Shown one piece after another: positions 4,760-64,000 of a stretch of DNA of 64,000 bases. Position numbers and translations under genes: made by a program. This DNA is from Leucoraja erinacea (Eukaryota), in the NCBI RefSeq assembly GCF_028641065.1, contig NC_073377.1, positions 24,180,001 to 24,244,000 of the forward strand, given 5' to 3'. A model generated the notes under the pieces. The model was not told where the DNA came from and did not search any database. It was given only the letters and a program-made list of their open reading frames with translations. The number at the start of each line of letters is the position of its first letter. The stretch's first letter is position 1.

Positions 4760-7700
4760 CTGGAAGGAAAAAATGGCAATAAGTATCAGTTTAAAAAAAA
4801 AAAAATCATAGCCTGCCTAATTCAAGAAATGCTGTGTCGGTTGCAAATACATTTCAAGAAAATTAATTTGCCAAATTAATTTTAGGACATTGTAAAGACA
4901 TAATGAATGATAACATTACAATTATAAGCTCTTTATTTGAGAAACAGAATTGTAAAGATTTAAAGTGAGGAGGTTTAATATTCAACTGCTCCTCTTATGG
5001 AGCTCAACACTGAATGCTCAAAATACTAGAGTTAGAAAAGGGCAAAAATAACTTTTTTGGCTTGTAATTGTTGCTTTGTGAACAGTTCTGGTTGCACACA
5101 GGAGTCTGGCCTTCAACTGACACAAAATTCTCTCAACCATCAACAAATAGTGTCCAGAAAAATATTTTGCATTGGCATGGCATCTTAATGCAACACTTTC
5201 ATATGTTTCATATCAATGATTTTCTTTATTTTGAGTGATCGTTCAATTACACGTACGCAGTTAACTGCCAATTGTTATTGTGCAACAACAATGAGCAATG
5301 AGTAAAAATTAATTTTTGTGTTGGAATATGATCCAGGACATTGCCTTACTTTATGAATAAGCTCCACTGATTCTGAATCTTTAGTTTTGTTTAGAGATAC
5401 AGTGTAGAAACATGTCCTTTCGGCCCACCGAGTCCGTACCAACCAGCGATCCCCGCACATTAATACTACCCTGCACACACTAGGGACAATTTACATTTAT
5501 ACCAAGTATACAAACCAAAGTCAATTAACCTACAAACCTGTACGTCTTTGGAGTGTTGGAGGAAACCGAAGATCTCGGAGTAAACCCACGCGGTCACGGG
5601 TAGAACGTTCAAACTCTATACAGACAGCACCCATAGTCGGGAGCAAACCTGTGTCTCTGGCGCTGCAAGGCAGCAACTCTACAGCTGTGCCACCGTGTCG
5701 CCCCGTACTTAGAGGATGACTTAGGTACTCCCTTAAAATTGTAGCCTTCCCGCAGCAGCAAGTTTTGAGATGAATTACATGCTTCTAAAGCAGTACTCGA
5801 CTCCCTTAAACTTCCAATGTTAAACATAAGAATGAAATAAAGGCATTAAGGCCAAATGGAACATAATGAATGATCACTTTTGTAAAACATAAAATAACCA
5901 TTCAACTATTTTTCTTTCTTCATTAAAATGGGATATGGGTGATGCTGGAAAAGTCAACATTTATTATCCATATTGCTCGAGAAGGCAGCTCATCACCTTA
6001 TTAAAATGAGGGACGAGGTACCGAATAGCCTTCTCCGGCACCTATTTTCTATGTTTTGTTTCTATGAAATGAAGTAGACAGTGACGACACGTTTCAAAAT
6101 GTTGATATAGTGAAGGTGTAAGTGTGGCCATTATCCTGGTAGAGAATCCACACCATGTGAAATTTGGAACATTGGCAGGAAAATTGTGTTTCCAGAAAAT
6201 TCAGGAAAAATGTTAATACATTTTAACGGTGATGTTACAAGAATTTCAGAGAGATCTGAAAACTGAGAATCTAAATAATCCAAATAAATAAACTTTGTTC
6301 AAGAACATTACCAAAATAAATCTAAATTAGAGGCCTACAATTATAGATTTGCTTATTTCAATCTCAGATTGACGGGGGAAAGAAAAATAAATTTGTTATT
6401 GTGGTATGCAACTGCTTTTTCTATGCTAGTTCAGGTTGATAAATTCACTTGAGGGGACAATACTAATCCAGGTTTCCAGGTTTGTTTGCTGGCTCTGTCA
6501 AGCAACATAAGGTACTTGGGAGGAATTGCAGATGCTGGTTTATACTGAAGTTAGACACAAAAAGCTGTAATAACTCACGGGTCAGGCAGCATCTCTGGCG
6601 AAAAGAAATAGGTGACGATTTGGGTCGAGACCCTTCAGTCCGAAGTAGCGCCTCGACCCGAAATGTCACCTATTCCTTTTCTCCAGAGAGGCTGCCTGAC
6701 CCGCTGAGTTACTCCAGCATTTTGTGTCTATAAGGTACTGGGAGGTCATACGAGGACCAGCTGCAGGCACTCATAAAAAACATTATAATACATAACAAAA
6801 ATTTAAAAAAACCTAAAATGCCTACCTCCTAAATCTCCCTCTGAAAGACAAGATCATATTCGATAACTAGTCAAAGGAATCTTTTATTGGTATTGGTATT
6901 AGTCTATTATTCCAACTTACTTGGTCAGTGTACCAGTAGTATGGAGTAGGATCAATGCCTTCACGGTCAAAGCCAGCCAAGAGCTCCTTGATGTCCCAGA
7001 TACGCATTGATCCTCCCACAATCTCACCAACATTGGGCATCAGCACGTCCACCTCACAAATTCAAAGCAACAATACTTGATATTAATTTTTTTTCATGTA
7101 AGGAAAACTCCAGCATTTGTAGTTCATAAGGTCATAAAGGATAGTAGTTTATATTGAGAAGAATTTACTGCAATGACAGGCATCTTTTTTAATTACAATA
7201 ATTACAATGTATTTTTAATTATTATAATAATAATAATAATTAATTACACAGAAACACAAGAGACTGCAGATGCTGAAACCTGGAGCAATAAACAACAAAC
7301 TGCCAGAAGAACTCCACAGTCAAGTGAATGGTCAACATTTTTTGAGATCAAGTCCATGCATCAGGACTCCTTAGATGCTACTTGAATATTAAACAATAAT
7401 GTATTTTTTGGGGTCATAGAAACCACATCGTAGAAACCAATTCCAATCTATCTGCATCACCAATACGATACTGGGTATTCATCCCTGGGGTACCAAGTTA
7501 AATGGTAACACCATTATATGGGACTAAATAGCATCGCAGATAGAGAACCATTCCTCTGGTATTTTGTGGTCTGCATGTTTCACGATCACATTTTATATAT
7601 ACTTACCCTTTAAGTATTACCAATCATTATGAGAATCAGTATACTGACATTGACTGTGCTATCAAAGGCAATATGCACTGAATTCCTGAGGTGACATCAG

Positions 7701-10700
7701 GGGACATTTGACGATGTGTGGCTTGTGGAAGATTGATAAAACCCAGTTGTGGGTGGATATTAAACACTCCAATCATTGGGAAATACCTTGCAAATACAGT
7801 TCTGCTTTGGCTACAGTGTACACCCATCTACAAAGCGCTTGCAATTACTTGCCCATGCCATTGCAGATCACCTCCCTAACCCACGATCTTTACTTTGAAG
7901 CACGACATGACAGCAGGAGTATGGGAACATGACCGCCTACAGGTCCTTCCCCAAGATGTATGTCACCTGGACTTGGAAATATATCGTTATACATCTAATT
8001 TAATCATTTTGGAACTTCCTATTCAACGGCACCATTGGAACACATTTACAGTGAGGAATGGCAAGGACTCAATGCTCACCACCATCTTCTCAAACACAAT
8101 TAGGGATGAACAATTTATGTTTGCCAGCATTGCACACTTCTTGAAAAAGGAATAATTAATTTTAAAATGCCCCTCCCCCCCCCCCCCCCCCCCCCGAAAC
8201 GCATAATTTGCAGTTAAACCAAAGAGCTAATGATTACAATGTATAGAACAAAAACTTTCATTGGCAAAAATAATGGGTTGGTAAACATACAGAGGTTTCC
8301 CCCTGCAGTCCAGGGGGAATTGTGCAGCATTATTGAGCCAAGAAAATCGGATTTGAACTTAGATCCGGCAAACTCAATTAATGGGAGGCAGGTAGAAAGA
8401 ACTGGATTAAGCAAAGCAGAGCTGGAAGCACTGAGAAGGCTCCCTCACTCACTGAGTCAGTGAGGTCAGCTGATGACCGCTCTACCGGCATCTGCTTGCT
8501 CTCCATGCTTCTGCTTGCTCTCCCATCACAACTGTTTCTGGAGGAGCAGCACCCCATATTTCGCCTGGGCAGTTTGCACCCCAGCGGTATGAATATTGAC
8601 TTCTCTAATTTCAGGTAGTCCTTACTTTCTCCTCCTCTTCTCAGCTCTCCCTCAGCCTACTTGCTCCACCTCTTCCTTTCTTCTTCCCGCCCCCCCACCA
8701 CCACATCAGTCTGAAGAAGGGTTTTGGCCCAAAACCTTGCCTATTTCCTTCGCTCCGTAGATGCTGCCTCACCCGCTGAGTTTCTCCAGCATTTTAATCT
8801 ACAACGGTTTCTTTGATTCTATCCCATGTCCATTTCTGACTTACAAAAAATTCAAGTTACGCAGTTTTCTGGAAAGAGCCCTTTCAGAATGCCTATATCT
8901 ATTTGATATACTACACATGACCATATTAATTGTTGGATTGACTCCATGGTCACTTTATAATCTTGCAAAAGTTGTAACTGGTTTTACCGATTCAGTAAGC
9001 CGGCGATCCTCCGTGCAGCGATGCATGTAGAAGGATTTGATCTCTGCAGGAAAACGACATAGGAGTATTGGCTCATTGATTGCATCAGTCATCAATCTCT
9101 CTGGAGCCTCTGGGATATCCTGTGCCAAAAAAAAAAAACTGTTCAATTCGTCCAAAGCATTAAACTGGTGCGAGTAAAGCAACAGATGGCTGTCAGAACA
9201 CTTTTGTATTAGCTCAGATACACAAGTTAGGGTACAGTCTGATTCTCTTCTACCTCTTTGTGGACATTGGACTTTGTCTCTGGAACTACTGCGCTACACT
9301 GCTGAGAACAATATTCTGCACTCTGTATCTTTCCCTTCACTCTACCTATTTTACTTGAGTTTGGCTTGATTGCAATTATGTATGGTATTATCTGATTTGA
9401 TTGGATAGCATGCAAAACAAAGGTTTTAACTGTATCTTGATATTTATGACAATAATAAACATAAACCTAAACCCACGTACTTGTTTCATCTAAACATTAA
9501 ATGGGAAAGTTTATGCAAAATCCAATAACAAGATGAATACTAAATTAGCAAATGTATTTTTTACTTATTGCAAGAGTGTAACGCAAACAATTGAATTTAC
9601 CATCTAAAATGTCTTGTACCTATGCTGAATGACACACAAAGTTATCACACAAATCTAGTGGATTCGTTCGAGAGAAAAATGTTTAAGGAAATTGTCATTT
9701 CAAGCAGAATCTCTGTAGTTTCAAGAGCAAATTCAGAAATGACTTGAATAAGAACCCTTCATGTACAGTGGTGCTTCCTGCAGTTAGTGTTTAACCAACT
9801 CACCATGGCAGTATTTACCCATTGTTCACATTCACTTGGTTACAATAGATTGAAATAAATACCTCTCCAAATTCATAGAAAGTTCCATCATCTTTCTTAA
9901 TATCATGTTCTTTCAGCCATGCGATGGCCTCAACGTAGTTCATTCTTTTGAAAGGACGCCGAGGAGGCTTGAATTCCTGATTTAAACAAAAAAAAAGCAA
10001 GAATAATTACGAAAATGCAAAATTAAGAAGGAAATCAGAAAGGCAAAAAGGAGCAGCAGATAGCTCTGGTAGATATTAAGGGAAATCAAGAGATATTACA
10101 ATGGAAAAGGGGGAGATTAGAGAGAGAAGAGGGCCTCATAAAAATCAAACGTCAAATATGTGTGGAGCCAAAGATCTTACTGTGGAGAAAGATGCGAAGT
10201 CTGGGGACCATGGGACAATCAATATTACAGTTGAAGAGGTATATGCAGGTAGATATATCTCCTGGGCCTGACCAGATATATCCGAGAACATTGTGGGAAG
10301 CTAGAGAAGAAATTGCAGGCACCCTGGCTGAGATATACAAATCATAAGATTTGAGTGAGGTGCCAGAAGACTTGAGGGTGTCTAATGTTGTGCCTCTATT
10401 TAAGAAGGGTACAATGAAAAGTTTTGGAACTATAGACTAGTGAGCATACAGTGCTTTCAGAAAGTATTCAGACCCCTTCAGTTTTTCCACGTTTTGTTAC
10501 GTTACAACCTTACTCTAAAATGGATTAAGTTCTTTTTTTTTTTTTAAATCATCAATCTACATACAATACCCCATAATAAAAAAGCGAAAACGGGTGTTTA
10601 GAAATTTTTGCAAAGTAATTAAAAAGAAATAACTGAAATATCACATTTACATAAGTATTCAGACCCTTTACTCAGTACTTTGTTGAGGCACCTTTGGCAA

Positions 10701-13700
10701 CGATTACAGCCTCACGTCTTCTTGGATATGACGCTACAAGCTTGGCACACCTGTATTTGGGTAATTTCTCCCATTCTTCTCTGCAGATCCTCTCAAGCTC
10801 TGTCAGGTTGGATGGGGAGCCTTGATGCACAGCTATTTCCAGAGATGTTCAATCGGGTTCAAGTCTGGTCTCTGGCTGGGCCACTCAAGGACATTCACAG
10901 ATTTGTCATGAAGCCACTTCTGAGTTGTCTTGGCTGTGCTTAGTGTCATTGTCCTGTTGGAAGGTGAACCTCTGCCCCAGTCTGAGGTCCAGAATGCTCT
11001 GGAGCAGGTTTTCAACAAGGATCTCTCTGTACTTTGCTCCGTTCATCTTTCCCTCGATCCCGACTAGTCTCCCAGTTCCTGTCGCTGAAAAACATCCCCA
11101 CAGCATGCTTCACCTTGGTATTGGCCTGGTTTCCTCCAGACGTGACGCTTGCCATTCAGGCCAAAGTGTTCAATCTTGGTTTCATCAGACCAGAGAATCT
11201 TGTTTCTCATGCCTTTTGGCAAACTCCAAGCGGGCTGTCATGTGCTTTTTACTGAGGGGTGGCTTCCGTCTGGCCACTTTACCATAAAGGCCTCATTGGT
11301 GGAGTGCTGCAGCTATTGTTGTCCTTCTGAAAGGTTCTCCCATCTCCACAGAGGAACTCTGGAGCTCGGTCAGTGACGATCGGGTTTTTGGTCACCTCCC
11401 TGACCATAGCCCTTCTCCCGATTGCTCAGTTTGGCCGGGTGGCCAGGTCTATGATAAGTCCTGGTGGATTCAAAGTTCTTCCATTTAAGAATAACGGAGG
11501 TCATTGTGCTCTTCGGGATCTGCAATGCTGCAGAAATTGTTTTATACCCTTCCACAGATCTGCACAATCCTGTCTCGGAGGTCTACGGACAATTCCTTCG
11601 TCTTCATGGCTTGATTTTTGCCGACATTCACTGTCAACTGTGGGACATAGAAACATCGAATATAGGTGCAGTAGTAGGCCATTCGGCCCTTCGAGCCTGC
11701 ACCGCCATTCAATATGATCGTGGCTGCTCATCCAACTCAGTATCCTGTACCTGCCTTCTCTCCATACCTCCCCGATCCCTTTAGCCACAAGGGCCACATC
11801 TAACTTCCTCTTAAATATAGCCAATGAACTGGCCTCAACTACTTTCTGTGGCAGAGAATTCCACAGATTCATCACTCTGTGTGAAAAATGTTTTTCTCGG
11901 TCCTAAAAGACTTCCCCCTTATCCTTAAACTCCTTGTTCTGGACCTTATATAGACAGGTGTGTGCCTTTTTAAATCATGTCCAATCAATTTAATTTACCA
12001 CTGGTGGACTCCAAGCAAGTTGTAGAAACATCTCAAGGATAATCAATGGAGACAGGATGAACCTCAGTTCAATTTTGAGTGTCATAGCAAACCTATGTAA
12101 ATGTGATATTTCAGTTATTTATTTTCAATTACATTGCAAACATTTCTAAACACCTGTTTTCGCTTCTTCATTCTGGAGTATTGTGTGTAGATTGATGATA
12201 TATAAAAAAAGAATTTAATCCATTTTAAAATAAAGCTGTAACGTAATAAAAAGGTGGAAAAAGTGAAGGGGTCTGAATACTTTCTGAATGCACTGTATTG
12301 TCTGTGTTAGGCAGGTTACTGGAGAGTATTCTAAGGGATAAGATATATATGCATTTGGATAGAGAGGGGCTGATTAGGTATATTCAGCAGAATTTTATAT
12401 GTGGGTGATCTTGTCTCACTAATCAGATTGAGTTTTTTGAAGAAGTAACTAAAAAGGTTGATGAGGGCAAAGCCATAGATGTTGTCAATATGGACTTCAG
12501 CAAGTCATTTGATAAGGCTCCACATGGTTGCTCTCAAAGGTTGGATCATATGGAATCTTGGGAGAGCTACCCGACTGAATAGGGAATAGGCTTCAAGAAA
12601 GAAAGCAGAGGATGATGGTGGAAGGTTGTTTATCGGATTGGAAACCACTGACTTGTGGTGTGCCTCAGGGCTGGGACCTGCTGTTTGTGGTTTATACCAA
12701 CGATTTGGATGAGAATGTACAAGGCATGATTAGTAAGATTGCTGATGACACTAAAGTAGTTGGCATCATAGATGCCAAGATGGCGACGCTGCCTTAGCAG
12801 CTGCTGCTTGCCTGCAGTCTGTCTGTTTTTTCTCTTATTTGTTGTTGTTCTTTTGTCCTGTTTTAGTTAATCTTTGGTTTATTAGGTTGTGTATGTGTGT
12901 GGGTGGGGGGGGGGGGGGGGGGGGGGAGGGGAGAAACATGTTTTTGGTCTCTTCCTTCGGGCGGATGCGACTTTTCTTGTCGTATCCCCCGTCTCCGTCT
13001 CCGTCGAGGTCTAATGGCGGAGCTGGCGGCCTTGGGGCTGTGGCAGCGGGGACTCGATTTCGGAGCTATGGCGGCGTTCCGACGACTCGACCAGAGCTGT
13101 GGCAGCTTTCCGCCGTTTCCACTTCGGAGCTGGGGCGGCGTTCCGGCGTTGGCGACCAGACTTCGGAGACTCGGCCGCGGGCCCAGTGGACGACATAGTC
13201 GGGAGCTCGCAGGTCACAGGTTGGTGACCTGTTTTTCCGGAGCTCCCGCAACAACAGCTTCGTCCGCTGGACTGAAGGGCAGCAGCTTCGACCACCCCGG
13301 GCCGCTGAGTTTAATTCAATTCAGATAATAATGAAAAATTGCAGCAGGATCGTGATCAGTTGGGCTGTGGAATGGTTCATGGGAGTTTAATAAAGAAAAG
13401 TGCAAGATGTTGCATTTTGCAAAGTCAAACCAGGGCAGGACCTTCACAGTGAATGGCAGGGCTCCGGGGAATGCCGTAAAGCAGAGGGATTTAGAAGTGC
13501 AGGGAGTTCCTTGAAAGTCGCATTGCAAGAAAGCTTTCGTCAGTCAGAATCTTTAACAGAAGTTGGTATGTTACATTAAGACATTGGTGATGTTACATTT
13601 AGAGTATTGTGTTTAGTTTTGGTCATCTTGTTATAGGAAAGATGTTGCTAAGTTGGAAAGGGTGCAGAGAGGAATTTACGAGGATGTTGCCAGGATTCAG

Positions 13701-25700: not shown

Positions 25701-28700
25701 CAATGACGATTCAGGTAGGTTTTGTAACATACCTACATCATGCAATTACTGAACATCAATATATTACCAATTACCTGACATGGCTCTGCAAGACTAGGGT
25801 CCAATGTAATAACTATCTTTTTGGCCTCTTGCAGATTCATCTCCCGACGCAATGCATCTTCTTGCTGTTAGAAAGGAAGTTTTCAAGTGTTTGTATCACA
25901 ATACTGTAAAAATGCACAGTTCTTCCTCTTTCCACCATAAATAATCTACAGTTCCAAATGGCACCATCTAAGCCTTTGCATATTACATGGCACATGCAGC
26001 ACAGAAAAGGGCTACATGACTAATTATGTAGATACTTTGGCACAAATTTCACTCAATGCCATCAGACCCAAATTCTTAACACAATTAATTGCATATGCTG
26101 AAAATCTGAAAAGAAAATCCTTGAACTACTCGGAAGCATGATTGGGTGGGGCAGTGAGCCACAGGAGCATGAAAGCACATACAATTTCAGGCAAAGAATG
26201 CTTCATCAGAACCAATGAAAAGGTCAACTACCTTTAAATTTAACTCCATTTCTCTTTCCACTGATGGTGAGCGACCCGGTGAGTGTTTCCAGCATTGTCA
26301 GTTCTTCTTTTCTCCCCCACCCCAAACCCACACACACCATTCTAACTGTTCATTAATTATTTGATAATTCTCAGAGTACTTAAGGAAGTAGCCCCAGAAA
26401 TAGTGGATGTATTAGTGATAATCTTTCAAAACTCTTTAGATTCTGGAGTAGTTCCTGAGGATTGGAGGGTAGCTAATGTAACCCCACTTTTTAAAAAGGG
26501 AGGGAAAGAGAAAACGGGGAATTACAGACCAGTTAGTCTAACGTCGGTAGTGGGGAAACTGCTAGTCAGTTATTAAAGATGGGATAGCAGCACATTTGGA
26601 AAGTGGCAAAATCATTGGACAAAGTCAGCACGGATTTATGAAAGGTAAATCATGTTGGACGAATCTTATAGAATTTTTCGAGGATGTAACTAGTAGAGTG
26701 GATAAGGGAGAACCAGTGGATGTGTTATATCTGTGCTTTCAGAAGGCTTTCGACAAGGTCCCACATAAGAGATTAGTATACAAACTTAAAGCACACGGTA
26801 TTGGGGGTTCAGTATTGATGTGGCTAGAGAACTGGCTGGCAGACAGGAAGCAAAGAGTAGGAGTAAACAGGTCCTTTTCAGAATGGCAGGCAGTGACTAG
26901 TGGGGTACTGCAAGGCTCAGTGCTGGGACCCCAGCTATTTACAATATATATTAATCATTTGGACGAGGGAATTGAATGCAACATCTCCAAGTTTGCGGAT
27001 GACTCGAAGCTGGGGGGCAGTGTTAGCTGTGAGGGGGATGCTAGGAGGCTGCAAGGTCACTTGGATAGGCTGGGTGAGTGGGCAAATGCATGGCAGATGC
27101 AGTATAATGTGGATAAATGTGAGGTTATCCACGTTGGTGGCAAAAAAACAGGAAAGTAGACTATTATCTGAATGGTGGCCGATTAGGAAAGGGGGAGATG
27201 CAACGAGACCTGGGTGTCATGGTACACCAGTCATTGAAAGTAGGCATGCAGGTGCAGCAGGCAGTGAAGAAAGCGAATGGTATGTTAGCATTCATAGCAA
27301 AAGGATTTGAGTATAGGAGCAGGGAGGTTCTACTGCAGTTGTACTGGGTCTTGGTGAGACCACACCTGGAGTATTGCGTACAATTTTGGTCTCCTAATCT
27401 GAGGAAAGACATTCTTGCCATAGAGGGAGTACAGAGAAGGTTCACCAGACTGATTCCTGGGATGGCAGGACTTTCATATGAAGAAAGACAGGATAGACTC
27501 GGCTTGTACTCGCTAGAATTTTGAAGATTGAGGGGGATCTTATAGAAACTTACAAAATTCTTAAGGGGGTGGACAGGCTAGATGCAGGAAGATTGTTCCC
27601 AATGTTGGGGAGTCCAGAACAAGGGGTCAAAGTATTAAGGATAAGGGGGAAATCCTTTAAAACCGAGATGAGAAGAACTTTTTTCACACAGAGAGTGGTG
27701 AATCTCTGGAACTCTCTGCCACAGAGGGTAGTTGAGGCCAGTTCATTGGCTATATTTAAGAGGGAGTTAGATGTGGCCCTTGTGGCTAAAGGTATCAGGG
27801 GGTATGGAGAGAAGGCAGGTACAGGATACTGAGTTGGATGATCAGCCATGATCAGGCTCGAAGGGCTGAATGGCCTACTCCTGCACCTATTTTCTATGTT
27901 TCTCCTTTTGGATCTCTTATTTCTGGCTCTTAGCGTTTGGATACTCCTGGAAGTGGAAACGTCTTCCCAACCTCAAGCCCATTGCATTTGTTCCTTTCTT
28001 TTTCTCAAAATGGTATGGCAGCAATCTATCACAATAATTTAGTGCCTCAGTTCCGATACCCTACTCGCTCCTCACCGATGCTATGAAACCTAACATTGTG
28101 TTTTGTATTCTTAAAGTCTGATTAGACTCCTTTCAAGTTAAATTACATGGCAAGTTGTAATTGAAAATTAAGACTTGTGTTTTATATTGTACCACTCACT
28201 GTTATTCATTCAAAATCTGCTGCACAACAAAGCAAAAATCATAAATTAAAAAATCTACATCAAACACAGCTGCTATTCATTGCACATGTAAAAGGAAATC
28301 CTAGACAAAAGCTTTGTAGTTCATCTTCACATGGTATAAAATTGCAAAACCAGGAAGTTATTAATTCTAAATTACTAAGTGCAATATAAAATTGAAATCC
28401 AAATCAACAGATTTATGTAGGTTTTGTTATGCGAAACAATTCAGCTTAAATTTCCCAAGAGTTTGTTAAATTCCAATTGTGCAGACCAGCCTCAAAAGCA
28501 CCAGACATTCAATTTCCCCATACGACTCATGCAATGTACCTATTTGGATATCAAATTATTCCAAATTGTTCCATTTAAACTCAGAGACAGCCAGTAATTA
28601 AGGAAGCAATAGTTTTTTTTTTCCCCAATAGAATGCATTTGATTAAACCTATCCTAATAATAAGAAATATTTATTCTAAATTAAAACCATTGAACCTCAG

Positions 28701-34700: not shown

Positions 34701-36759
34701 ACCACCCCCTCCCCGGGCACTTTCCCTTGCAACCGCAAGAGATGCAACACTTGTCCCTTTACCTCCCCCTTCGACTCCGTTCAAGGACCCAAGCAATCGT
34801 TCCAGGTGCGACAGAGGTTTACCTGCATCTCCTCCAACCTCATCTATTGCATCCGCTGCTCTAGATGTCAGCAGATCTATATTGGTGAGACCAAGCGGAG
34901 GTTGGGCGATCGTTTCGCCGAACACCTCCGCTCGGTCCGCAATAACCAAGCTGACCTCCCGGTGGCTCAGCACTTCCTGCATTTTTCCTGCATTTAGCCT
35001 GTCCAATCCTTTAAGAATTGTATATGTTTCTGTAAGATTCCCTCTCATCCTTCTAAATTCCAGTGAATACAAGCCCAGTCAAGCAATCCCAGGAATTAAC
35101 CTGGTGAACCTATGCTGCACTCCCTCAATAGCAATAATGCTGAACTCCCTCAATAGGGTGATTTCACCAAAGGTCAAATGAGCGTAGATCCCCCCTCACG
35201 TGACCGAAAATTTTAACTGGAGGACATCTCTCAGTTTGGTACATGTAAGTGAATGGGGAAACACGCACTTTCCCACCCGTTAAAAACATGGAAAACGGCC
35301 GATTTTTGAGCTGAAATTTTCTGTGGTAGTTGGGGCGACCGTGAAGCACAGCGACCTAAATTTTCAGGCAAAAAAAAAGATAGAAAGTGAGGTAATTACA
35401 AGAGGGAACTGAAGGTAGAAAGCGGCAGAAGTGAACAGCTGACAATTGCCGTGGTGATTTTAAGATCCAAAATATCGGGAATTATCACGTTTGCTCGCTG
35501 AATTTCATCAAAAGTAAGGCATTATTAACTTACTTTTGATGAAATTCAGCGAGCAAACGCGATAATTCCCGATATTTTGGATCTTAAAATCACCACGGCA
35601 ATTGTCAGCTGCTCACTTCCGCCGCTTTCTACCTTCAGTTCCCTCTTGTAATTACCTTACTTTCTATCTTTTTTTTTGCCTGAAAATTTAGGTCGCTGTG
35701 CTTCACGGTCACCCCGACTAGCACAGAAAATTTCAGCTCAAAAATCGGCCGTTTTCCATGTTTTTAACGGGTGGGAAAGTGCGTGTTTCCCCATTCACTT
35801 ACATGTACCAAACTGAGAGATGTCCAGTTAAAATTTTCGGTCACGTGAGTGGGGATCTACGCTCATTTGACCTTTGGTGAAATCACCCTATAGCAGTAAC
35901 GCCCTTCCTCAAATTAGGAGACCAAAATTGCACACAATACTCCCGGTGCGGTCTCACCAAGGACCTGTAAACTGCAGTAGGAGCTCCTTGCTCCTAAATT
36001 CAAATCCTCTGGCAATTAAGGCCAATATGCCATTGGCTTTCTTCACTGCCTGCTGTACATGCATGTTTAAAGCCCTGTCCCAGAATGAACCCGTACCGTG
36101 GGACAGGGCTATTACTTTCAGTGATTGATGTACAAGCATGCACAGGTCAGTTGCATCTCCCCTTTTCCTAATCTGACACAATTCAGATAATAATCTGCTT
36201 TCCCGTTCTTGCCACCAAAGTGGGTAAACTCACATTCATCCACATTATACTGCATCTGCCCACTCCCCCAAAAAGGTCTGAAGGGTCTTGACACGAAATT
36301 CCTGCCTGTCCCGCTGAATTGCTCCAGCATTTTGTGTCTAAATGCAATGGGAGTTAGCCGGTGGCCGGTGCCCAACACGAACTAGATCAACCCGCTTGGG
36401 CGCGCCGTCTTTTTACCACCCCGGGGGGCAAGAGGAAGGGAAACCAGCGCGGAAGGTGACCGGCAGCGGGTCGCCCACCCAGGCGGGGCCGGGGCCGGGG
36501 TAGGAGCCGGGGCCGCCTGTGAAAGGCGACAGTCCAGTCCCGTCCCCCCCCCCCGTCATCACCAGAGAGGGGTAGACGAGCCAAACTCGCAGGCCGGCGA
36601 TCCAGCTGCTCCCCGCTGATCGCAGAGCCGCATCGCATCGCATCGCCGGCCCGGCCCCGCCCCGCCCGGTGTCCCGGCGCCACCGGTGCCTGGCGCAGGG
36701 TAACCGGCCTCACCTAACGACAGCTTCGCCGTCTCCTCACACACGTCTCCGGCAGACAT
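4628..36759 (-). CDS. NARS1: Cytoplasmic asparaginyl-tRNA synthetase, complete 15-exon CDS (1683 nt, 560 aa + stop)
   Basis: Exons join in frame through GT..AG introns: 36759-36714, 31910-31828, 31736-31671, 30033-29941, 25864-25775, 23206-23128, 19428-19358, 19111-19025, 18095-17874, 17011-16812, 14795-14660, 9976-9863, 9119-8988, 7052-6921, 4759-4628. Class IIb motifs present: OB-fold [23 protein letters not shown], motif 2 [24 protein letters not shown], motif 3 [12 protein letters not shown]. Confidence 0.97.
5380..5704 (-). mobile_element. tRNA-derived V-domain SINE (HE1-like) with CR1-type tail
   Basis: GGGGCGACACGGTGGCACAG A-box head, GGTTTCCTCC..ACTCCAAAGACGT V-domain, (CTAAA)n-like tail. 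Related fragments at 57351-57780 and 60945-61061. Confidence 0.8.
6921..7052 (-). CDS. NARS1: NARS1 exon 14 ([17 protein letters not shown]...YYWYTDQ)
   Basis: ORF 6867..7052; rare GAG acceptor (tttgtgag), gtaagt donor, 132 nt. Confidence 0.94.
8538..8800 (+). mobile_element. Penelope-like element 3' end with pLTR
   Basis: [26 protein letters not shown] followed by a pLTR with degenerate hammerhead motif. Confidence 0.8.
8988..9119 (-). CDS. NARS1: NARS1 exon 13 ([12 protein letters not shown]...[15 protein letters not shown])
   Basis: ORF 8955..9182; gcacag acceptor, gtaaaa donor. Confidence 0.96.
9863..9976 (-). CDS. NARS1: NARS1 exon 12 ([18 protein letters not shown]...FYEFGE)
   Basis: ORF 9815..10000; atcag acceptor, gtattt donor. 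Confidence 0.96.
10449..12295 (-). mobile_element. Tc1-family IR/DR DNA transposon with decayed DD34E transposase
   Basis: TA|CAGTG...CACTG|TA ends; long inverted ends with internal DR AAGTATTCAGACCC; fragments [44 protein letters not shown]. Confidence 0.93.
11647..11944 (-). mobile_element. CR1 LINE 3' fragment nested in the Tc1
   Basis: Minus-strand CR1 tail ([25 protein letters not shown] + TTTCTATG-type end); Tc1 sequence rejoins as GGAC|CTTATATAGACAGG. Confidence 0.85.
12774..13322 (+). mobile_element. CpG-rich non-coding retroposon inside a CR1
   Basis: Starts GCCAAGATGGCG (YY1-like), poly-G, CpG-rich body, ATTCA-repeat tail. Confidence 0.55.
14660..14795 (-). CDS. NARS1: NARS1 exon 11 ([45 protein letters not shown])
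   Basis: tttcag acceptor, gtaagt donor, 136 nt. Confidence 0.96.
16298..16527. mobile_element. Inverted pair of Penelope pLTRs with 16-bp TSD
   Basis: About 95-bp inverted arms 16298-16495; TSD CACAAATTCAGTATCA at 16282-16297 and 16528-16543. Confidence 0.85.
16400..16427 (+). ncRNA. Minimal type I hammerhead ribozyme motif (PLE-associated)
   Basis: CUGAAGA-A-GGGU-UUCG-GCCC-GAAACGUU; short helix I GGU/GCC. Confidence 0.65.
16812..17011 (-). CDS. NARS1: NARS1 exon 10 ([14 protein letters not shown]...[14 protein letters not shown])
   Basis: ORF 16784..17074; tttcag acceptor, gttggt donor (phase 2). Confidence 0.96.
17874..18095 (-). CDS. NARS1: NARS1 exon 9 ([16 protein letters not shown]...[12 protein letters not shown])
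   Basis: ORF 17841..18125; ttccag acceptor, gtatgt donor, 222 nt. Confidence 0.97.
19025..19111 (-). CDS. NARS1: NARS1 exon 8 ([29 protein letters not shown])
   Basis: cttcag acceptor, gtagac donor, 87 nt. Confidence 0.95.
19358..19428 (-). CDS. NARS1: NARS1 exon 7 ([23 protein letters not shown])
   Basis: ttaacag acceptor, gtaatc donor. Confidence 0.96.
19538..22980 (+). mobile_element. Cluster of CR1 LINE fragments in NARS1 intron 6
   Basis: Copies at about 19538-20566, 20800-21570 and 21990-22980 with RT and 3' motifs. Confidence 0.85.
23128..23206 (-). CDS. NARS1: NARS1 exon 6 ([27 protein letters not shown])
   Basis: ttcatag acceptor, gtgagt donor, start of anticodon-binding OB fold. 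Confidence 0.96.
24872..25735. mobile_element. Non-autonomous TIR DNA transposon with 7-bp TSD
   Basis: TAGCAATGTTACAAAA...TTTTGTAACATACCTA flanked by CATCATG on both sides. Confidence 0.8.
25775..25864 (-). CDS. NARS1: NARS1 exon 5 ([30 protein letters not shown])
   Basis: aacag acceptor, gtaatt donor, 90 nt. Confidence 0.95.
26364..27903 (+). mobile_element. Young 5'-truncated CR1 LINE (RT plus 3' tail)
   Basis: [47 protein letters not shown]; few frameshifts. Confidence 0.93.
28750..29436. mobile_element. PIF/Harbinger MITE
   Basis: TTA|AGGGCCTGTCCCGCTTAGGCGA...TCGCCTAAGTGGGACAGGCCCT|TTA. Confidence 0.85.
29941..30033 (-). CDS. NARS1: NARS1 exon 4 ([31 protein letters not shown])
   Basis: tttcag acceptor, gtaaac donor, 93 nt. 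Confidence 0.95.
30470..30591 (+). mobile_element. Helitron 3' end fragment with (GT)n
   Basis: GGACCCAACGGGTCC hairpin then CTTGGTCTAG|T; same end as 48886. Confidence 0.65.
31671..31736 (-). CDS. NARS1: NARS1 exon 3 ([22 protein letters not shown])
   Basis: atag acceptor, gtaaat donor, 66 nt in frame. Confidence 0.95.
31828..31910 (-). CDS. NARS1: NARS1 exon 2 ([27 protein letters not shown])
   Basis: ttcacag acceptor, gtaaga donor, matches vertebrate NARS1 N-terminal domain. Confidence 0.95.
32300..33167 (+). mobile_element. CpG-rich non-coding retroposon in NARS1 intron 1
   Basis: (GT)n and poly-G blocks, CpG-rich body, ATGACAATTAAA + (TTGTA)n tail. Confidence 0.55.
33921..34452. mobile_element. 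PIF/Harbinger MITE
   Basis: TTA|TGCCCCTGTCCCATTTAGGAAA...TTTCCTAAGTGGGACAGGGGCG|TTA; interior related to 28750-29436. Confidence 0.85.
34500..34975 (+). mobile_element. Penelope-like element GIY-YIG endonuclease fragment
   Basis: [37 protein letters not shown]. Confidence 0.9.
35155..35889. mobile_element. Near-perfect palindromic MITE (about 365-bp arms), AT target duplication (ISL2EU/Harbinger-like)
   Basis: AGGGTGATTTCACC...GGTGAAATCACCCT; arms pair to a roughly 10-nt loop near 35520; inserted in a CR1 as ccctcaAT|..|ATagcag. Confidence 0.85.
36070..36111. mobile_element. 42-bp minimal Harbinger-type element inside a CR1
   Basis: TTA|AAGCCCTGTCCCA..TGGGACAGGGCTA|TTA; the CR1 rejoins across it. 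Confidence 0.75.
36714..36759 (-). CDS. NARS1: NARS1 coding exon 1 ([16 protein letters not shown])
   Basis: ACAATGT Kozak context inside the CpG island; G|GTGAG donor; phase 1 matches exon 2. Confidence 0.88.
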
Positions 36760-36804
36760 TGTCCGTGCCCGAGGCTCAGCGGCGGCTGCAGTTGATGTGA
36801 CGGT

Positions 36805-36821
36805 CAAAGATCCTATAGCAG
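36805..36821. mobile_element. 17-bp transposon-end remnant with 8-bp TSD in the NARS1 5' UTR/promoter
   Basis: GTGACGGT|CAAAGATCCTATAGCAG|GTGACGGT. Confidence 0.7.
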
Positions 36822-37098
36822 GTGACGGTGACGGCGGCGGCGGCCGTTTATCAATGAGGAGGCGCGAGGAGGAGGAGACCGTTGGGGGGGGGGCGGGGCT
36901 TGTGGGCCGGAACGTCATTGACCACCACCCAGAGCCGCTCTCTGATTGGACGAGCGGCAGCGTGGCGGACAAGAGCAGCTCGCGCCTGCGCACAAGGGAG
37001 CTAGTTGCTGCCGGTTGCATCAGTCGGAGGCGGAGAGGGGGAGGGGGAGGGCGTACCCCCTTGCTCCCAGCCAACATCACAAAATGCACCATTTGGTG

Positions 37099-37122
37099 CA
37101 AAGATCCTATAGCAGATCTTTG
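37099..37122. mobile_element. 24-bp fused transposon-end remnant with 8-bp TSD
   Basis: ATTTGGTG|CAAAGATCCTATAGCAGATCTTTG|ATTTGATG. Confidence 0.7.
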
Positions 37123-37204
37123 ATTTGATGTTTGTTGAAACTGAAAGAAACCACTGCCGGGAAACAGCAATGTGAAAGAGAAATGAAACTGAAATAGAGT
37201 TCAG

Positions 37205-37815
37205 AGATAGTGTCAAGAGTGTTTTATTATTATATTAATTTTCACTTGCACTAGGAAGCTTTTAGTTGCTGTAGTTCATGGGCTCATTAAATGCATCAAC
37301 ACAACGAATAAATACGCCATTTATTAGTCATGATTGTAAACCAACCCTGATTGTACAAATCGAAATACACAGTGTAACCGTAGAAGTGCAAAGTTCATCA
37401 TAGTTTGGTGCCAAGGTAGGGTTATGGTTGATGGTGCAGAGAGATGCAAGAGCCTGATGGTTGCTGCAGAGAAGCTGTTCCTGAACCTGATGCTCATGGT
37501 TCTCAAGCTCTGTCTGATACCTTCCTGGTGGGGGCAATGAGATGAGAGCATGGCCAGGATAGTGTGGCCTATGATTGAGATTAGCTGCCCTCTTGAGGGT
37601 GTGCTTCTGTACCCTTGATGGACACGACAACATCCACCACCATCTGCATGCTCTTCTCCAGTCTTGAGCATTCACAGTACTAAACCAGGCTGTGATGCAA
37701 TCAGTCAGTATCTTTGGTCATTATGCTCTCCATCATACACCTACGGAAGTTCAACAGAGTAGCGACACGTGACATCTCCTCAAACTTCAGAGAAAGTAGA
37801 GTAGGATTTCTGAGC
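37205..37815 (-). mobile_element. Decayed Rex1/Babar LINE 3' fragment upstream of the NARS1 promoter
   Basis: RRCMMESIMT, RQSLRTMSIRFRNSF motifs. Confidence 0.65.
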
Positions 37816-38454
37816 CCAAGACAGATCATGGCTCGAGGGGCCGAATAGCCTACTCCTGCACCTATTGTGTATTGCTTATCATCAGAGATATGCAATTCAT
37901 AAATTCTTCAAATCTACGTAGCCTGGGAGAATGTGCAACCCCACACAGACAGAATTAATATGTCAGGACTGAAACCGGGTCTCTGGAGCCATGAAGCAAA
38001 CTTCACCACTGTGCCAACCGAATTGCACTAATTATTGCACTAATGGAGTGTGACCTGATAACTCAGAAACACTGTCTCAGGAGATGAAGGGAAGCACACC
38101 TTTTACCACCTTAACCGCATGTATTGCAGCTTTGTATTTCCAATCCCAGATTCCTCTGTACTTTATGCTCCAATAAGCGAGTTCGGTATTCCGACTGCGC
38201 ATGCCCGGGTCATAGGTCACTGGCTATAAAACAGTCTTGGCAATGGTGATGCTGCACTGTGTGCCGGCTTGCATTCCGTCCATGGTCAAGTTCAGCTCTC
38301 CGTCACTGCGGGTGCTGTTGGTCTGTCCCCTCCCCGATGTCCTGTCCCTGTCTGGAGGTGTCCGGGGTGGCTCAGGGCTGGCGGGGTGGCCCTGGACTTG
38401 CAGCCGCTGGACTCTGCCTGTGGTCGGCAGCCCACCACCTCCACCCCCCTCCCC

Positions 38455-39130
38455 TCAGCCTGACACTGAGATCCTGCTGAAGATGGGCAGCCACTGGGTT
38501 GCGGGTACTGTTGGTGATGGTGGTGCTGGCGGCAGCAGCAACCTCCTCCCCACTCCCTTGCCCAGCCCCAAGCCCAGAGTCTGGGCCACCTCCAACTCCA
38601 GGATGCGGCTGAAGGTCGCCTGCAGAGTGGCACAGTCTAGCGCCGGGCCGGAGGAGGCTGAGGCCAGGCTGACGCTCTGGTGAGGCCGGGGCCCTCGCTC
38701 CTCCTTGGGGTTGTGTATGAAGTGGCAGCGGGTACCGTAGGGGCAGAAGCCAGTGGTGTGCAAGGTACGGCTTGTACTTTGCACACCACCGGCTTCTGCC
38801 CCAACGGTACCCGCTGCCACTTCATCCACAACCCCGAGGAGGAACCGCTATCCCAGGTACGACTTGTACTTGAGGCCGTGGGCGAATTGGCACTTGTAGT
38901 TGGAGCGGGATTGGGCTGAAGTTGGGCTGGCTGTGGGTTCTGTGGGTCTGTAGCCGCTGGTGCTGTTGGTTGGTCCGGTGGGAGAGGCGGAGATGAGGCG
39001 GAGGTGAGCTGGGGTTTGCGCTTCTCCGCTGTGGGCCTCAGGACCGGTGTCCCGTCCGGATGGGGATGGGACACTCGAATGGGGGGGGGGACGACCGGGG
39101 ACGCTCCAGTGGTGGTTCGGCAGCACTTGC
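38455..39130 (-). pseudogene. ZFP36/tristetraprolin-family (tandem CCCH) pseudogene fragment, rearranged
   Basis: KCQFAHG (end of finger 1), [21 protein letters not shown] (finger 2), and C-terminal [10 protein letters not shown] resembling the TTP-family NOT1-binding motif. Linker deleted, frame broken, internal inverted duplication. Confidence 0.8.
38701..38841. repeat. 68-bp inverted repeat (5-nt loop) formed by a duplicated CCCH finger
   Basis: 38701-38768 versus the reverse complement of 38774-38841: 5 mismatches counted by eye. Confidence 0.9.
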
Positions 39131-41615: not shown

Positions 41616-42199
41616 TTCATTAAGTCTGCTTCTACACAATACTTGCTTCTATCCAATCACCGTTTTCTTTTTTTATTTACTGCTGTATTCCAATACTTCT
41701 CTCTATTAATTTAGTTTAAAGTTGTCCATGAATCACAGCTGAGATGTAACTCACCCATCAACAAGGATAGTTTCTTCCCAGGTGATATCAGGCAACAGAA
41801 CTGTCCTTTCACCAACTGGTGTACGATTCCAACCTCATTGGATACTCTTAAAGGAATTTATCTTGCAATAAATGTTATACCCTCTATCCGATATCTGTGT
41901 ACTGTGGACGGCTTGTTTGTAATCTTGTACAGTCTTATCATTAACTGGATAGCACACAGCAAAAAGCTTTTCACTGTACCTCAGTACATGTGACAATAAT
42001 AAACTAAACTCACTGTTCAAGGTAAAAGGTGCGTGGGTGTTAAGGTTTCAAGGTTAGTTTATTGTCACATATACCAGTTAAGGTACAGTGAAATTTGAGT
42101 TACCGTACAGCCATACTAAGTGAAAAACTCCAAGACACACACCCACATAGAAGTTAACATAAATGTCCATCACAGTTGATTCCACATTCCAATTGTTCA

Positions 42200-43300
42200 A
42201 TTGCAGGAGGAGGCTACTAAAAGGGACAAAGAACGAAGGAGACAACTTGGATGTGTACTGGATTGTATGACTGGACTCTGGACCACTCCAGCAGGGCAAA
42301 CATGCATTACAGATTCTTTGGCAGTATGGGTTACAGAATGTATGCACAATGCAACCCATTGTGGTGCGAGGGCAGTAGGAGACTCTTTTGGCTAATTGGT
42401 AGCATCCAAGATTACAAACTTTAGCTCAGAAGGTAAGCAATAGTCGCCTGGTCTGCCAGAAATACAATCCAGGGAAAGGAATAGGATGCGAAGAGGGAAA
42501 AACACCATTGCCTATGGGCCCGTTCGAGACACTGACACTTCTATATTGAATTAGAAAGGTGAGAGGGTTATAAGTATGTACTTGTCATAGTCGATGTATT
42601 CAGCCGGTGGATCGAAGCTTATTCAACCCTTGATAATAAAGCGGCTACTGTTGTCAAGGTGTTAATGAGAGAAATTATCCCTAGATTTGGCATCCCTATT
42701 CAACTTAGTTCAGATAACAGTCCACACTTTATTGGACAAATCAATAAATAATTTTATGAACAGCTGGGGATCCGGCAGCAATTGCACTGTGCTTATCGAC
42801 CACAGGCTGCTGGACTTGTAGAATCAGACCCTTAAAACTAAATTAGCTAAATTAAACGCAGAGACTGGACTTGGTTGGATTAAATTACTCCCCATAGCTT
42901 TATCTCAGATGAGAGTCACGCCTGTAGGGAAATCTAGACAGCCCAACTGAAATTGTTTATGATAAACCCTGAAGAACACATTGGAATCAGAATGCAATGA
43001 AAATAATTAACTTCTATCATAGGACTGCGGAGATGACCAACTACATTCTAGCTTTGACCAGAGCATAGAGGGACTCACACTGTAGAGTAAAAGCAGTCTC
43101 TAGTTGGATGCCTTTGTTAGCAGCTTCAACTAAAGTTAAACCTGGAGACCATGTCCTTATAAAGAACTGGGTAAGGAAAGGATTAGAGGTTCACTGGGAA
43201 GGACCTTACCGGTTCTCCTAACGACCACAACAGCATTGAAAGTTAACAGGAGGAATGCGAGGGTACATCTTCATCACTGTAAGAGTATCATTGGAAATAG
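42200..43300 (+). mobile_element. Endogenous retrovirus pol integrase relic (class I/epsilon-like)
   Basis: HNATHCG zinc-binding start, YKYVLVIVDVFSRWIEAY, IIPRFGIPIQLSSDN, HCAYRPQAAGLVE, WEGPY.VLLTTTTALKV (GPY/F); stops and frameshifts. Confidence 0.85.
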
Positions 43301-45931: not shown

Positions 45932-61791
<15,860 letters not shown>

Positions 61792-62086: not shown

Positions 62087-64000
62087 GTATTCAGTGTTCA
62101 GTATTTATTTAATATAATTTTAACTGAGTACTTGCATACACAGATGAAACGAAAAAACTGTTTCTCGATCAGTTTCTATTCATTGTAGTTAATAAAAACA
62201 GGATGAATACATAGAGCTTTAAAAAAATTTAAATGACCATATCTAAAAACAAAAAGTAGGCGTAAAAATTACAACCATATTAAAACAGACATTCCGGTCG
62301 ACTGTGGTTTTGCTTCGACAGATGCCCAGCTGTCAAAGTTTGGGTGAGGTTGAACGTGTTGGTGAACGTTATATGGGGAGGGGACACCGTTTTTTTTTTA
62401 ATTTTTTTATTTTATTTTTATTAGAAGTACGGTAAATTACACTACTACACACAACACATATATCTTAATACATTTTTTGTACCGCTTCATTTTTTTTGAG
62501 CTTTAAGAAAAAGGTAGAAGTAAGGAAAGTAAAGAAAGTGCGTGAGAGTCGTGAAGTGCAAGAGTGTTGGGAAAAGAAAGCCCCTTAGAAAAGAAGTTAG
62601 AGAAGGAAGTAAAGTGAGAAAATAGATCCTAGAAAAGAAAGAAAAAGAAAATAGGAACAATCGCTCTATTATAACATTAAACTCCGCAGAAAGGGGGCTA
62701 CCAACCAAGTCTGTTTTTGTTGTTTTACCTCCCGTTACCAGGTCCTGATACCACTTATTTATTTGTTTATTTAAATTACTATTGCACCTCATATCCAGAT
62801 AGGTCCAGAAACATAGACCACGTCTTTTGAAATTGGTCTGCTTTACCTGCTAAGAGGAATCTCATCTCTTCCAGATGTAATGTTTCAAACATGGGAGGGG
62901 ACACCGTTAATCAGTCTTATTGCCTGTGGGAAGAAGCTGTGTAGCATCCTGCTGGTTTTGCAGCTGATGCTCCTGTACCTCTTCCCAGATGGCAGAATGG
63001 AGAAGATGTGGTGTGATGGATGATGGGGGTCCTTGATGAAGGAGATGGCTCTGCTGATGCTCCGCTTCTTATAGATCTCCACCAGGAAAGGGAGTGGGGC
63101 ACCAATGATCCTGCTGGCTGTCTTCACTATCCTTTGGAGTTGATTTTGCTCATAAGCCTTGCAGCTCCCAAACCAGGAAGCGATGCCGTAGGTCAATATA
63201 CTCTCGATGGTGCCCCTGTACAAGGTCCTTAGATGAACAGTAGGGAGATCTGCTTTTCTTAGTCTCCAGAGAGGGTGGAGCCGCTGCTGAGCTCTTTTGA
63301 TGACTGGTGTGGTGTTGGTCATAGAGGTCAGGTCATCCGCCAGGTGAAGTCCCAAGAACTTCACACTGCTGACCCTCTCCACAGCAACACCATCAATATG
63401 CAGCGGTGTGTGATGGTGTTTTCCAGCCCTGCTGAAATCGATCACCATTTCCTTAGTCTTTTCCACGTTGAGGGTGAGATTGTGAGATCTGCACCACTCT
63501 GTAAGCAGCTCCACCTCCAACCTGTACGCCGACTCATTGTTGTCGCTGATGAGACCCACCACTGTTGTGTCATCAGAGAACCTGTTGATATAATTATTGT
63601 TGAGTCTGGCAGTACAGTCATGAGTAAGCAGACTAAACAGCAGGGGGCTTGGGACACAGCCTTGGGGTGGGCCAGTGCTCACAGCGATGGTTCTTGATGT
63701 CTGACTACCCACCCTGACTCTCTGCTGCCGTTGTGTCAGAAAGTTAAGGACCCAGTTGCAAGTGCCAGTATCCACCTTCAATAGCTTCAGCTTCTCCACC
63801 AGCTGCTGTGGGATGATTGTGTTAAAAGCAGAGCTGAAGTCTATAAAGAGGATCCTGGCGTAGGTGTTCTTCCGGTCGAGATGTGCGAGGTTGTGTTGTA
63901 GAGACTGCATCCTCTGTGGACCGGTTGGCTCCATAAGCGAACTGCAGTGGGTCTAGGTCGGCTGGGAGACAATTTTATGGGAGTCATGGGAGCATTACAT
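62087..64000 (-). mobile_element. Rex1/Babar-type LINE with long open RT frame (349-aa ORF 62885-63934)
   Basis: [50 protein letters not shown]; 3' part separated by an L1 insertion. Confidence 0.9.
62392..62892 (-). mobile_element. 5'-truncated L1-type element with poly(A) tail and 16-bp TSD
   Basis: TSD GGGAGGGGACACCGTT at 62376-62391 and 62893-62908; ORF2-like tail LEEMRFLL..FQKTWSMFL; AATAAA plus poly(A). Confidence 0.8.

Follow-up and report, generated by a model that had tools for sequence, protein, structure and literature searches.

Two stubs of one transposon terminus at the NARS1 5' end of Leucoraja erinacea: probable excision scars of a P-type element

The 64,000 nucleotides analysed here come from Leucoraja erinacea (assembly GCF_028641065.1, contig NC_073377.1, positions 24,180,001 to 24,244,000 of the forward strand) and are called the window throughout; all searches for motif copies, for elements and for open reading frames (ORFs) were confined to it. 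On its minus strand lies a gene which we identify, from the matches of its individual exons, as NARS1, and near the 5' end of this gene one and the same 17-mer, CAAAGATCCTATAGCAG, stands twice, each time between 8-bp direct repeats of a different sequence (site 1, 36797-36829; site 2, 37091-37130). In the present study we describe these two sites, follow them into the contigs of three related species, and argue that both are most likely excision scars of a transposon of P type (P element / THAP9).

The NARS1 5' end and its two bracketed 17-mers

Eight minus-strand reading frames downstream of the two sites were searched one by one, without a joined spliced model, of which five matched Pfam families of class II aminoacyl-tRNA synthetases and three matched no family. 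The family tRNA-synt_2 was found three times (two matches above the curated cut-off and one marginally below it), and tRNA_anti-codon and AsnRS_N were found once each, both weakly and below cut-off; one frame, furthermore, matched structures of the human cytoplasmic asparagine-tRNA ligase (6.8e-38). The name NARS1, which the first-pass annotation had given to the gene from its letters, is therefore borne out by both Pfam and structure matches of individual exons.

Translation of NARS1 starts on the minus strand at the ATG 36759-36757, and the first exon is followed by the splice donor GT at 36713-36712. Coverage by raw RNA reads from the species of the window (run X24) extends over 36696-36871, with depths of 31/15 at 36784-36827, of 6.7/2.9 at 36828-36871 and of 0.6/0.4 beyond, that is, with a fade-out between 36828 and 36915. 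Since this coverage runs past site 1, the site lies within the transcribed 5' untranslated region (5' UTR), where its 17-mer occupies the 46-62 nt before the ATG, in agreement with the distance of 46 nt that had been counted earlier. The insert at site 1 adds no upstream ATG on the mRNA strand. Site 2 is found ~230-290 nt upstream of the transcript start, so that both sites (2/2) fall within ~300 nt of the RNA-defined start of exon 1, in a CpG island with observed/expected CpG ratios of 0.94 and 0.70 around the two sites.

The 17-mer has exactly two copies in the window, both of them exact, with a spacing of 294 bp between the two inserts (starts 36805 and 37099). Site 1 reads GTGACGGT / CAAAGATCCTATAGCAG / GTGACGGT; its direct repeats are perfect (8/8) and, because the bases outside each copy differ, their length is exactly 8 bp. 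Site 2 reads ATTTGGTG / CAAAGATCCTATAGCAG + ATCTTTG / ATTTGATG, with repeats that match at 7/8 positions and an insert of 24 nt, the last 8 bases of which are the reverse complement of the first 8; at the join, a shared G extends the inverted end to 8 nt, which amounts to a microhomology of 1 nt. The two sites (2/2) thus retain the same 17 nt of one end, together with 0 nt (site 1) or 7 nt (site 2) of the other. Coordinates and layout are precisely those that the first-pass annotation had reported, including the completion of an inverted end by ATCTTTG.

When three mismatches were allowed, CAAAGATCCTATAGCAG still gave only these 2 matches, against 0.20 expected, and at least two matches arose in 2 of 100 shuffles. 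As a control for the bracketing, we collected from the window every pair of maximal exact direct repeats with a length of 15-25 nt (n=163): an 8-bp repeat with at most one mismatch brackets a copy in a single pair, which is the CAAAGATCCTATAGCAG pair itself, and there it does so at both copies. For arbitrary 8-mers taken as control words, the background rate of bracketing was 2.9% (279/9503 occurrences). Because of these two figures, 1/163 and 2.9%, chance bracketing is all but excluded as an account of the two sites.

Table 1. Coordinates of the parts of the two sites and of the first NARS1 exon (TSD, target-site duplication)
Feature	Position	Strand	Basis or remark
Site 1, left TSD GTGACGGT	36797..36804	.	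Exactly 8 bp, neighbouring bases differ
Site 1, terminal stub CAAAGATCCTATAGCAG, 17 nt, nothing of the other end	36805..36821	+	Window sequence; relatives' contigs
Site 1, right TSD GTGACGGT	36822..36829	.	Window sequence
Site 2, left TSD ATTTGGTG	37091..37098	.	Window sequence
Site 2, terminal stub, identical 17-mer CAAAGATCCTATAGCAG	37099..37115	+	Window sequence
Site 2, ATCTTTG, 7 nt of the opposite inverted terminus	37116..37122	+	CAAAGATC on the minus strand at 37115-37122
Site 2, right TSD ATTTGATG, 1 mismatch	37123..37130	.	Window sequence
NARS1 exon 1, 5' UTR holds site 1	36714..36871	-	RNA raw reads

Age and dispersal of the sites in related species

The relatives were represented by contigs of runs X3, X15 and X18 (species B, C and D; the species of the window is A), and presence or absence was read from alignment coordinates, gap counts and depth, not from contig letters. 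B differs from the window by ~1-2.5% (11/437 and 7/740 letters), and C and D by ~5-7.5% (20/265, 41/776, 34/717 and 28/540 letters).

Site 1 is present in B, whose contig 16 takes in the left flank as well as the 17-mer before it stops at 36821. Contig 1 of C (1476 nt) is collinear with the window on both sides, over 36512-36776 and 36822-37597, and carries 12 letters in place of the 45 window bases 36777-36821, the alignment restarting exactly at 36822; as 12 letters are too few to hold it, the 17-mer is absent there. For D, contig 8 spans 36314-37030 and the depth drops from 33.7 to 16.1 in the bin 36784-36827. Since 16.1 equals 33.7 x 21/44, 23 positions are missing in this bin, and ~3 more are missing in the next, which a gap of 25 nt at 36805-36829 would explain as 23 + 2. 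An empty site in a relative, lacking the insert and one TSD copy, is the hallmark of cut-and-paste transposition for which the first-pass annotation had suggested looking in orthologous promoters; at site 1 it is indicated by the absence of the 17-mer in C and by the ~25 nt missing in D. These two observations identify site 1 as an insertion of 17 + 8 nt.

In B, contig 17 lacks no more than 2 letters across 740 bases, so that site 2 must be complete there. The collinear contigs of D (contig 9) and C total 21 and 28 deleted letters, respectively, below the 32 needed for an empty site, and therefore site 2 is at least partly present in both. Site 2 is thus probably the older of the two. In the simplest history, site 2 is older than the divergence of the four species from one another, in keeping with the single mismatch between its TSD copies, and the event at site 1 took place in the ancestor shared by A and B. 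The DNA just upstream of site 2 (37004-37061) varies among the relatives: in C, the contig is longer by 13 letters between 37009 and 37051, and in D the alignment of contig 8 ends at 37030 and is followed by 39 unlike letters, contig 9 beginning at 37061.

The contig depths also revealed that the motif is not restricted to this locus. At 37092-37135 they reach 170, 414 and 131 in B, C and D, against ~25-90 alongside, and in C the bin 36784-36827 has a depth of 165.6 although C's own contig is without that stretch. This excess means that other loci in the genomes of B, C and D carry the motif; it belongs to a multi-copy family dispersed in three related genomes, and the scars are part of a genome-wide pattern, not unique to NARS1. 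Additionally, one contig of C reads ...ATCTTTG, then exactly 8 letters, then CAAAGATCC..., and one contig of D has ATCTTTG and CAAAGATCC units in the same arrangement with 16 letters between them. Paired units of this kind, 8 or 16 letters apart, are what would be expected from successive insertions into a single 8-bp target or one next to it; their flanks are not visible.

Further copies, ORFs and repeats in the window

No further diverged copies were detected in the window: with as many as three mismatches allowed, a 14-mer of the motif was matched 5 times, where 7.6 matches would be expected. Of the 4 CAAAGATC words (3.6 expected), 3 come from the two sites themselves. When one mismatch is tolerated, the 8-nt terminus has 63 occurrences and is bracketed in 6 cases, where ~1.9 would be expected at the 2.9% rate; once the two known sites are removed, 3/60 remain, an excess over background that is not significant. 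One sequence in a NARS1 intron, at 10161-10188, reads TGTGGAGC / CAAAGATCTTAC / TGTGGAGA, with the exact 8-nt terminus plus 4 nt between flanking 8-mers that match at 7/8 positions, and 10 of the 12 bases of its insert agree with the product expected from two tails annealing at a palindromic GATC. It may be a third, older scar, at the strength that the non-significant excess of bracketed hits (3/60 against 2.9%) allows.

Short palindromic inserts between 8-bp repeats (at most one mismatch) were more numerous than in shuffled sequence, 5 against a mean of 0.63 in 30 block shuffles, and one of the five is site 2. The candidates at 19109, 45416 and 52236 were rejected as family members, lying in AT-rich DNA and having unrelated ends, and so was the candidate at 20428, placed inside what we take to be a common cartilaginous-fish repeat. 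Rfam showed no family over either site, its sole match within 36000-38000 being a weak one at 36522-36598, far below threshold. A full-text literature search with the 14-mer returned only a quantitative PCR primer for GABAB2R in an unrelated paper.

A scan for 8-bp TSDs combined with 12-nt terminal inverted repeats (TIRs) no more than 6 kb apart gave 5 candidates, none with CAAAGAT ends. Three of them are artefacts of a 739-bp palindrome (see below), and the remaining pair of candidates (4915-8240 and 41835-43295) is no more than chance would produce, since one match also arose in 5 of 20 shuffles. The window holds 81 ORFs of at least 90 amino acids, and the 31 of them that were scanned for families matched only RVT_1, accompanied by ALKBH8_N, and families of the zf-CCCH type. 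ORFs with RVT_1 at 62888-63934 (minus strand) and 26596-27156 (plus strand; E 1.5e-23 and 4.1e-22) are fragments of long interspersed nuclear elements, and the ORF at 38458-38829 (minus strand) has a zf-CCCH match (E 3.7e-06). Four ORFs around 48876-49664 run through a stretch of N at 49144-49286 and are uninformative. A NARS1 intron contains, at 10675-11900 on the minus strand, a decayed Tc1/mariner-like transposase with broken frames, in which the frame 10836-11042, outside the 81 ORFs, has a weak, sub-threshold DDE_3 match (E 0.00012; 22.4 bits against a cut-off of 28.6).

The 739-bp palindrome, at 35153-35891 in NARS1 intron 1, is nearly perfect, with arms 98-99% complementary, a loop of 10 nt and no TSD. 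It sits between pieces of an abundant repeat and could be either a real foldback or an assembly artefact. Site 2, taken as its stub and left flank, aligns with 35870-35896 at 20 of 24 bases, or at 23 of 28 with one gap. We rejected 35873-35896 as a third partial scar, as it is the outer end of the palindrome, has its twin in the arm that starts from 35153 and is without a TSD. Nearer to exon 1, 36300-36343 is the end of an extremely abundant dispersed repeat, with a summed contig depth of ~7-12 million in the three related genomes and with thousands of RNA reads upon it.

Excision by a P-type transposase, its rivals and its meaning

The P transposase carries a THAP domain at its N terminus, and its catalytic domain is RNase-H-like and interrupted by a GTP-binding insertion; nearly all that is known of P-element chemistry (17-nt stagger, GTP dependence, promoter targeting) comes from Drosophila. 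According to the sections of PMC7776569 available, P elements generate TSDs of 8 bp, their 5' cut is placed 17 bp into the inverted repeat so that 17-nt 3' extensions result, insertions prefer promoters, and the elements hop locally; the traits that the first-pass annotation had invoked (8-bp TSD, 17-nt stagger, promoter preference) agree with this description.

Accordingly worded for the skate, the proposed course of events would be as follows. A cut-and-paste DNA transposon with ends reading CAAAGATCCTATAGCAG... inward would have inserted and duplicated 8 bp of its target. The transposase would later have excised the element by strand nicks 17 nt apart, so that each flank would have kept a 17-nt single-stranded tail of the transposon end, and end joining would have closed the break after the excision. 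At site 1, one tail would have survived whole and the other would have been trimmed as far as the duplex (TSD+17+TSD); site 2 would have retained one whole tail and 7 nt of the other, joined at the 1-nt microhomology (TSD+17+7+TSD). We infer from the two sites the former presence of a full element, the 17-nt stagger and the P-type transposase.

What the sites display fits this proposal in several respects. Two independent events, each consisting of an insert of one family and of an 8-bp duplication, are supported at the NARS1 5' end. The duplications are of P length (8/8 at site 1, 7/8 at site 2); no more than 17 nt of either end is kept, as read from the scar geometry of two sites, a sample that can prove no upper bound; and both sites (2/2) are close to a promoter or 5' end, a preference that is characteristic of the P superfamily without defining it. 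A fixed staggered cut predicts the common break at base 17, and random internal deletion does not. The combination of 8-bp duplication, 17-nt limit and promoter landing therefore favours the P superfamily, an assignment drawn entirely from the geometry of the scars. Thus, of the first-pass proposal that a P-type element had inserted twice into this promoter and been excised, the two insertion-and-duplication events and the insertion at site 1 stand, and the full-length element with these termini did not turn up within the 64-kb window.

The closest parallel is offered by the repair junctions of P{w^a} in Drosophila, which, in the excerpt of PMC2895639 that includes its Table 1, place at most 17 nt from each of the two ends between two copies of the 8-bp TSD, with joins that are blunt, at short microhomologies or with filler. 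Blunt or short-microhomology joins are common to those junctions and to the skate scars, and insertion near promoters is shared as well (PMC7776569, in part). The two systems differ in that the terminal sequences are unrelated beyond the initial CA, and in that the skate scars are old, fixed germline events, known from the scars and without a transposase in the window, whereas the Drosophila junctions are induced. Among vertebrates, the zebrafish element Pdre2 and its zfTHAP9, as presented in the part of PMC10983969 consulted, is P-like, has TSDs of 8 bp and bears signs of having once been mobile, and excision by zebrafish THAP9 is reported there, without footprint sequences or positions of the cuts; the 13-bp TIR of Pdre2 (CATACCTGTCAAC) is unlike the skate terminus.

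Several alternatives have to be weighed against P-type excision, and the most serious of them, although we regard it as unlikely, is that the scars stem from another superfamily with TSDs of ~8 bp, namely hAT, Mutator-like elements or Merlin. No transposase was seen in the window that would directly exclude any of these three, and hAT elements (Ac/Ds, hobo, Tol2) typically have 8-bp TSDs and termini starting with CA, like the skate sites; hAT excision, on the other hand, proceeds through flank hairpins and would leave footprints without long TIR pieces, unlike the 17-nt stubs present at both sites. Mutator-like elements have TSDs of 8-10 bp, usually 9, and mostly excise precisely. For the mosquito Mutator-like element (MULE) Muta1, the accessible part of PMC5225508 gives 8- or 9-bp TSDs, compatible with the skate repeats, and occasional retention of part of its long TIRs; the retained pieces, however, are irregular and of at most 13 bp, and with donor TSDs ~90% of the excisions are precise. 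Exactly 17 nt kept at 2/2 sites departs from that pattern and equals the length documented for P (PMC7776569 and PMC2895639, both in part).

It is more doubtful still that the inserts were never full elements and represent a micro-transposon made of TIRs only, or a fragment of a transposon end integrated by transposase. In formal terms, site 2 qualifies as a minimal element, its 24 nt being closed by inverted ends of 8 nt and flanked by a TSD, and the paired units in the relatives' contigs, 8 or 16 letters apart, are of the same kind. Site 1 is one-ended, however, and a transposase that pairs two ends could neither mobilise it nor insert it with a TSD on both sides; P elements moreover require internal transposase-binding sites beyond the TIR (figure 4 legend of PMC7776569, seen in part), and the shared break at base 17, which the staggered cut explains, is left unaccounted for by so small an element. 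It is very improbable that the 17-mer is a motif conserved in promoters or in RNA, or that it recurs by chance, with the flanking 8-mers a coincidence: both copies do lie in one CpG-rich promoter region, and two of the hundred shuffles did yield two matches, but the orthologous contigs of C and D lack site 1, no more than one of the 163 control pairs is bracketed, Rfam places no family on the sites, and the motif is dispersed in three other genomes.

Returning to P-type excision, a number of observations weigh against it. A full-length element with these termini is missing from the window, the 31 of 81 ORFs that were scanned revealed no transposase of P, hAT or MULE type, and there was no credible match (0) to a THAP-like pattern. 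The 17-nt limit is based on two sites (n = 2), and the terminus resembles the Pdre2 TIR and the tail of the Drosophila P element only in its initial CA. At site 1, C is 33 letters short rather than 25 and hence provides no clean empty site; the empty-site calls for C and D are derived from aligner coordinates and depth arithmetic, that for D on the assumption that contig 8 alone contributes to the bin 36784-36827. Lastly, the match at 20 of 24 bases between the stub with left flank of site 2 and the outer end of the palindrome, 1.2 kb away, is unexplained and would not be expected if the flank were arbitrary target DNA.

Our literature search, outside of which lay subscription journals and Repbase, found no paper on such scars in skates or cartilaginous fish. 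The present study contributes an empty-site test between species, the placement of a scar in a 5' UTR by RNA, and controls at the level of the window. Beyond the two sites, we lean towards a broader view: that the skate lineage carried a promoter-seeking P-superfamily transposon, active both before the ~5% divergence of the four species (site 2) and after it (site 1), and that its many stubs flanked by TSDs would form a genome-wide record that the unusual 17-nt staggered cut of the Drosophila P transposase is ancestral to the P/THAP9 superfamily, vertebrates included. If this is true, genome sequences could reveal how vertebrate THAP9-type transposases cleave DNA, and scars fixed in the germline of a cartilaginous fish, with retained ends that stop sharply at 17 nt, would be natural evidence for conservation of the stagger throughout the superfamily. 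Scars that are missing in relatives would, in turn, give datable events of insertion and excision. The promoters and 5' UTRs of housekeeping genes would then be recurrent sites of landing and scarring. At the present locus, NARS1, a housekeeping gene, has tolerated 25 extra bases in its 5' UTR.
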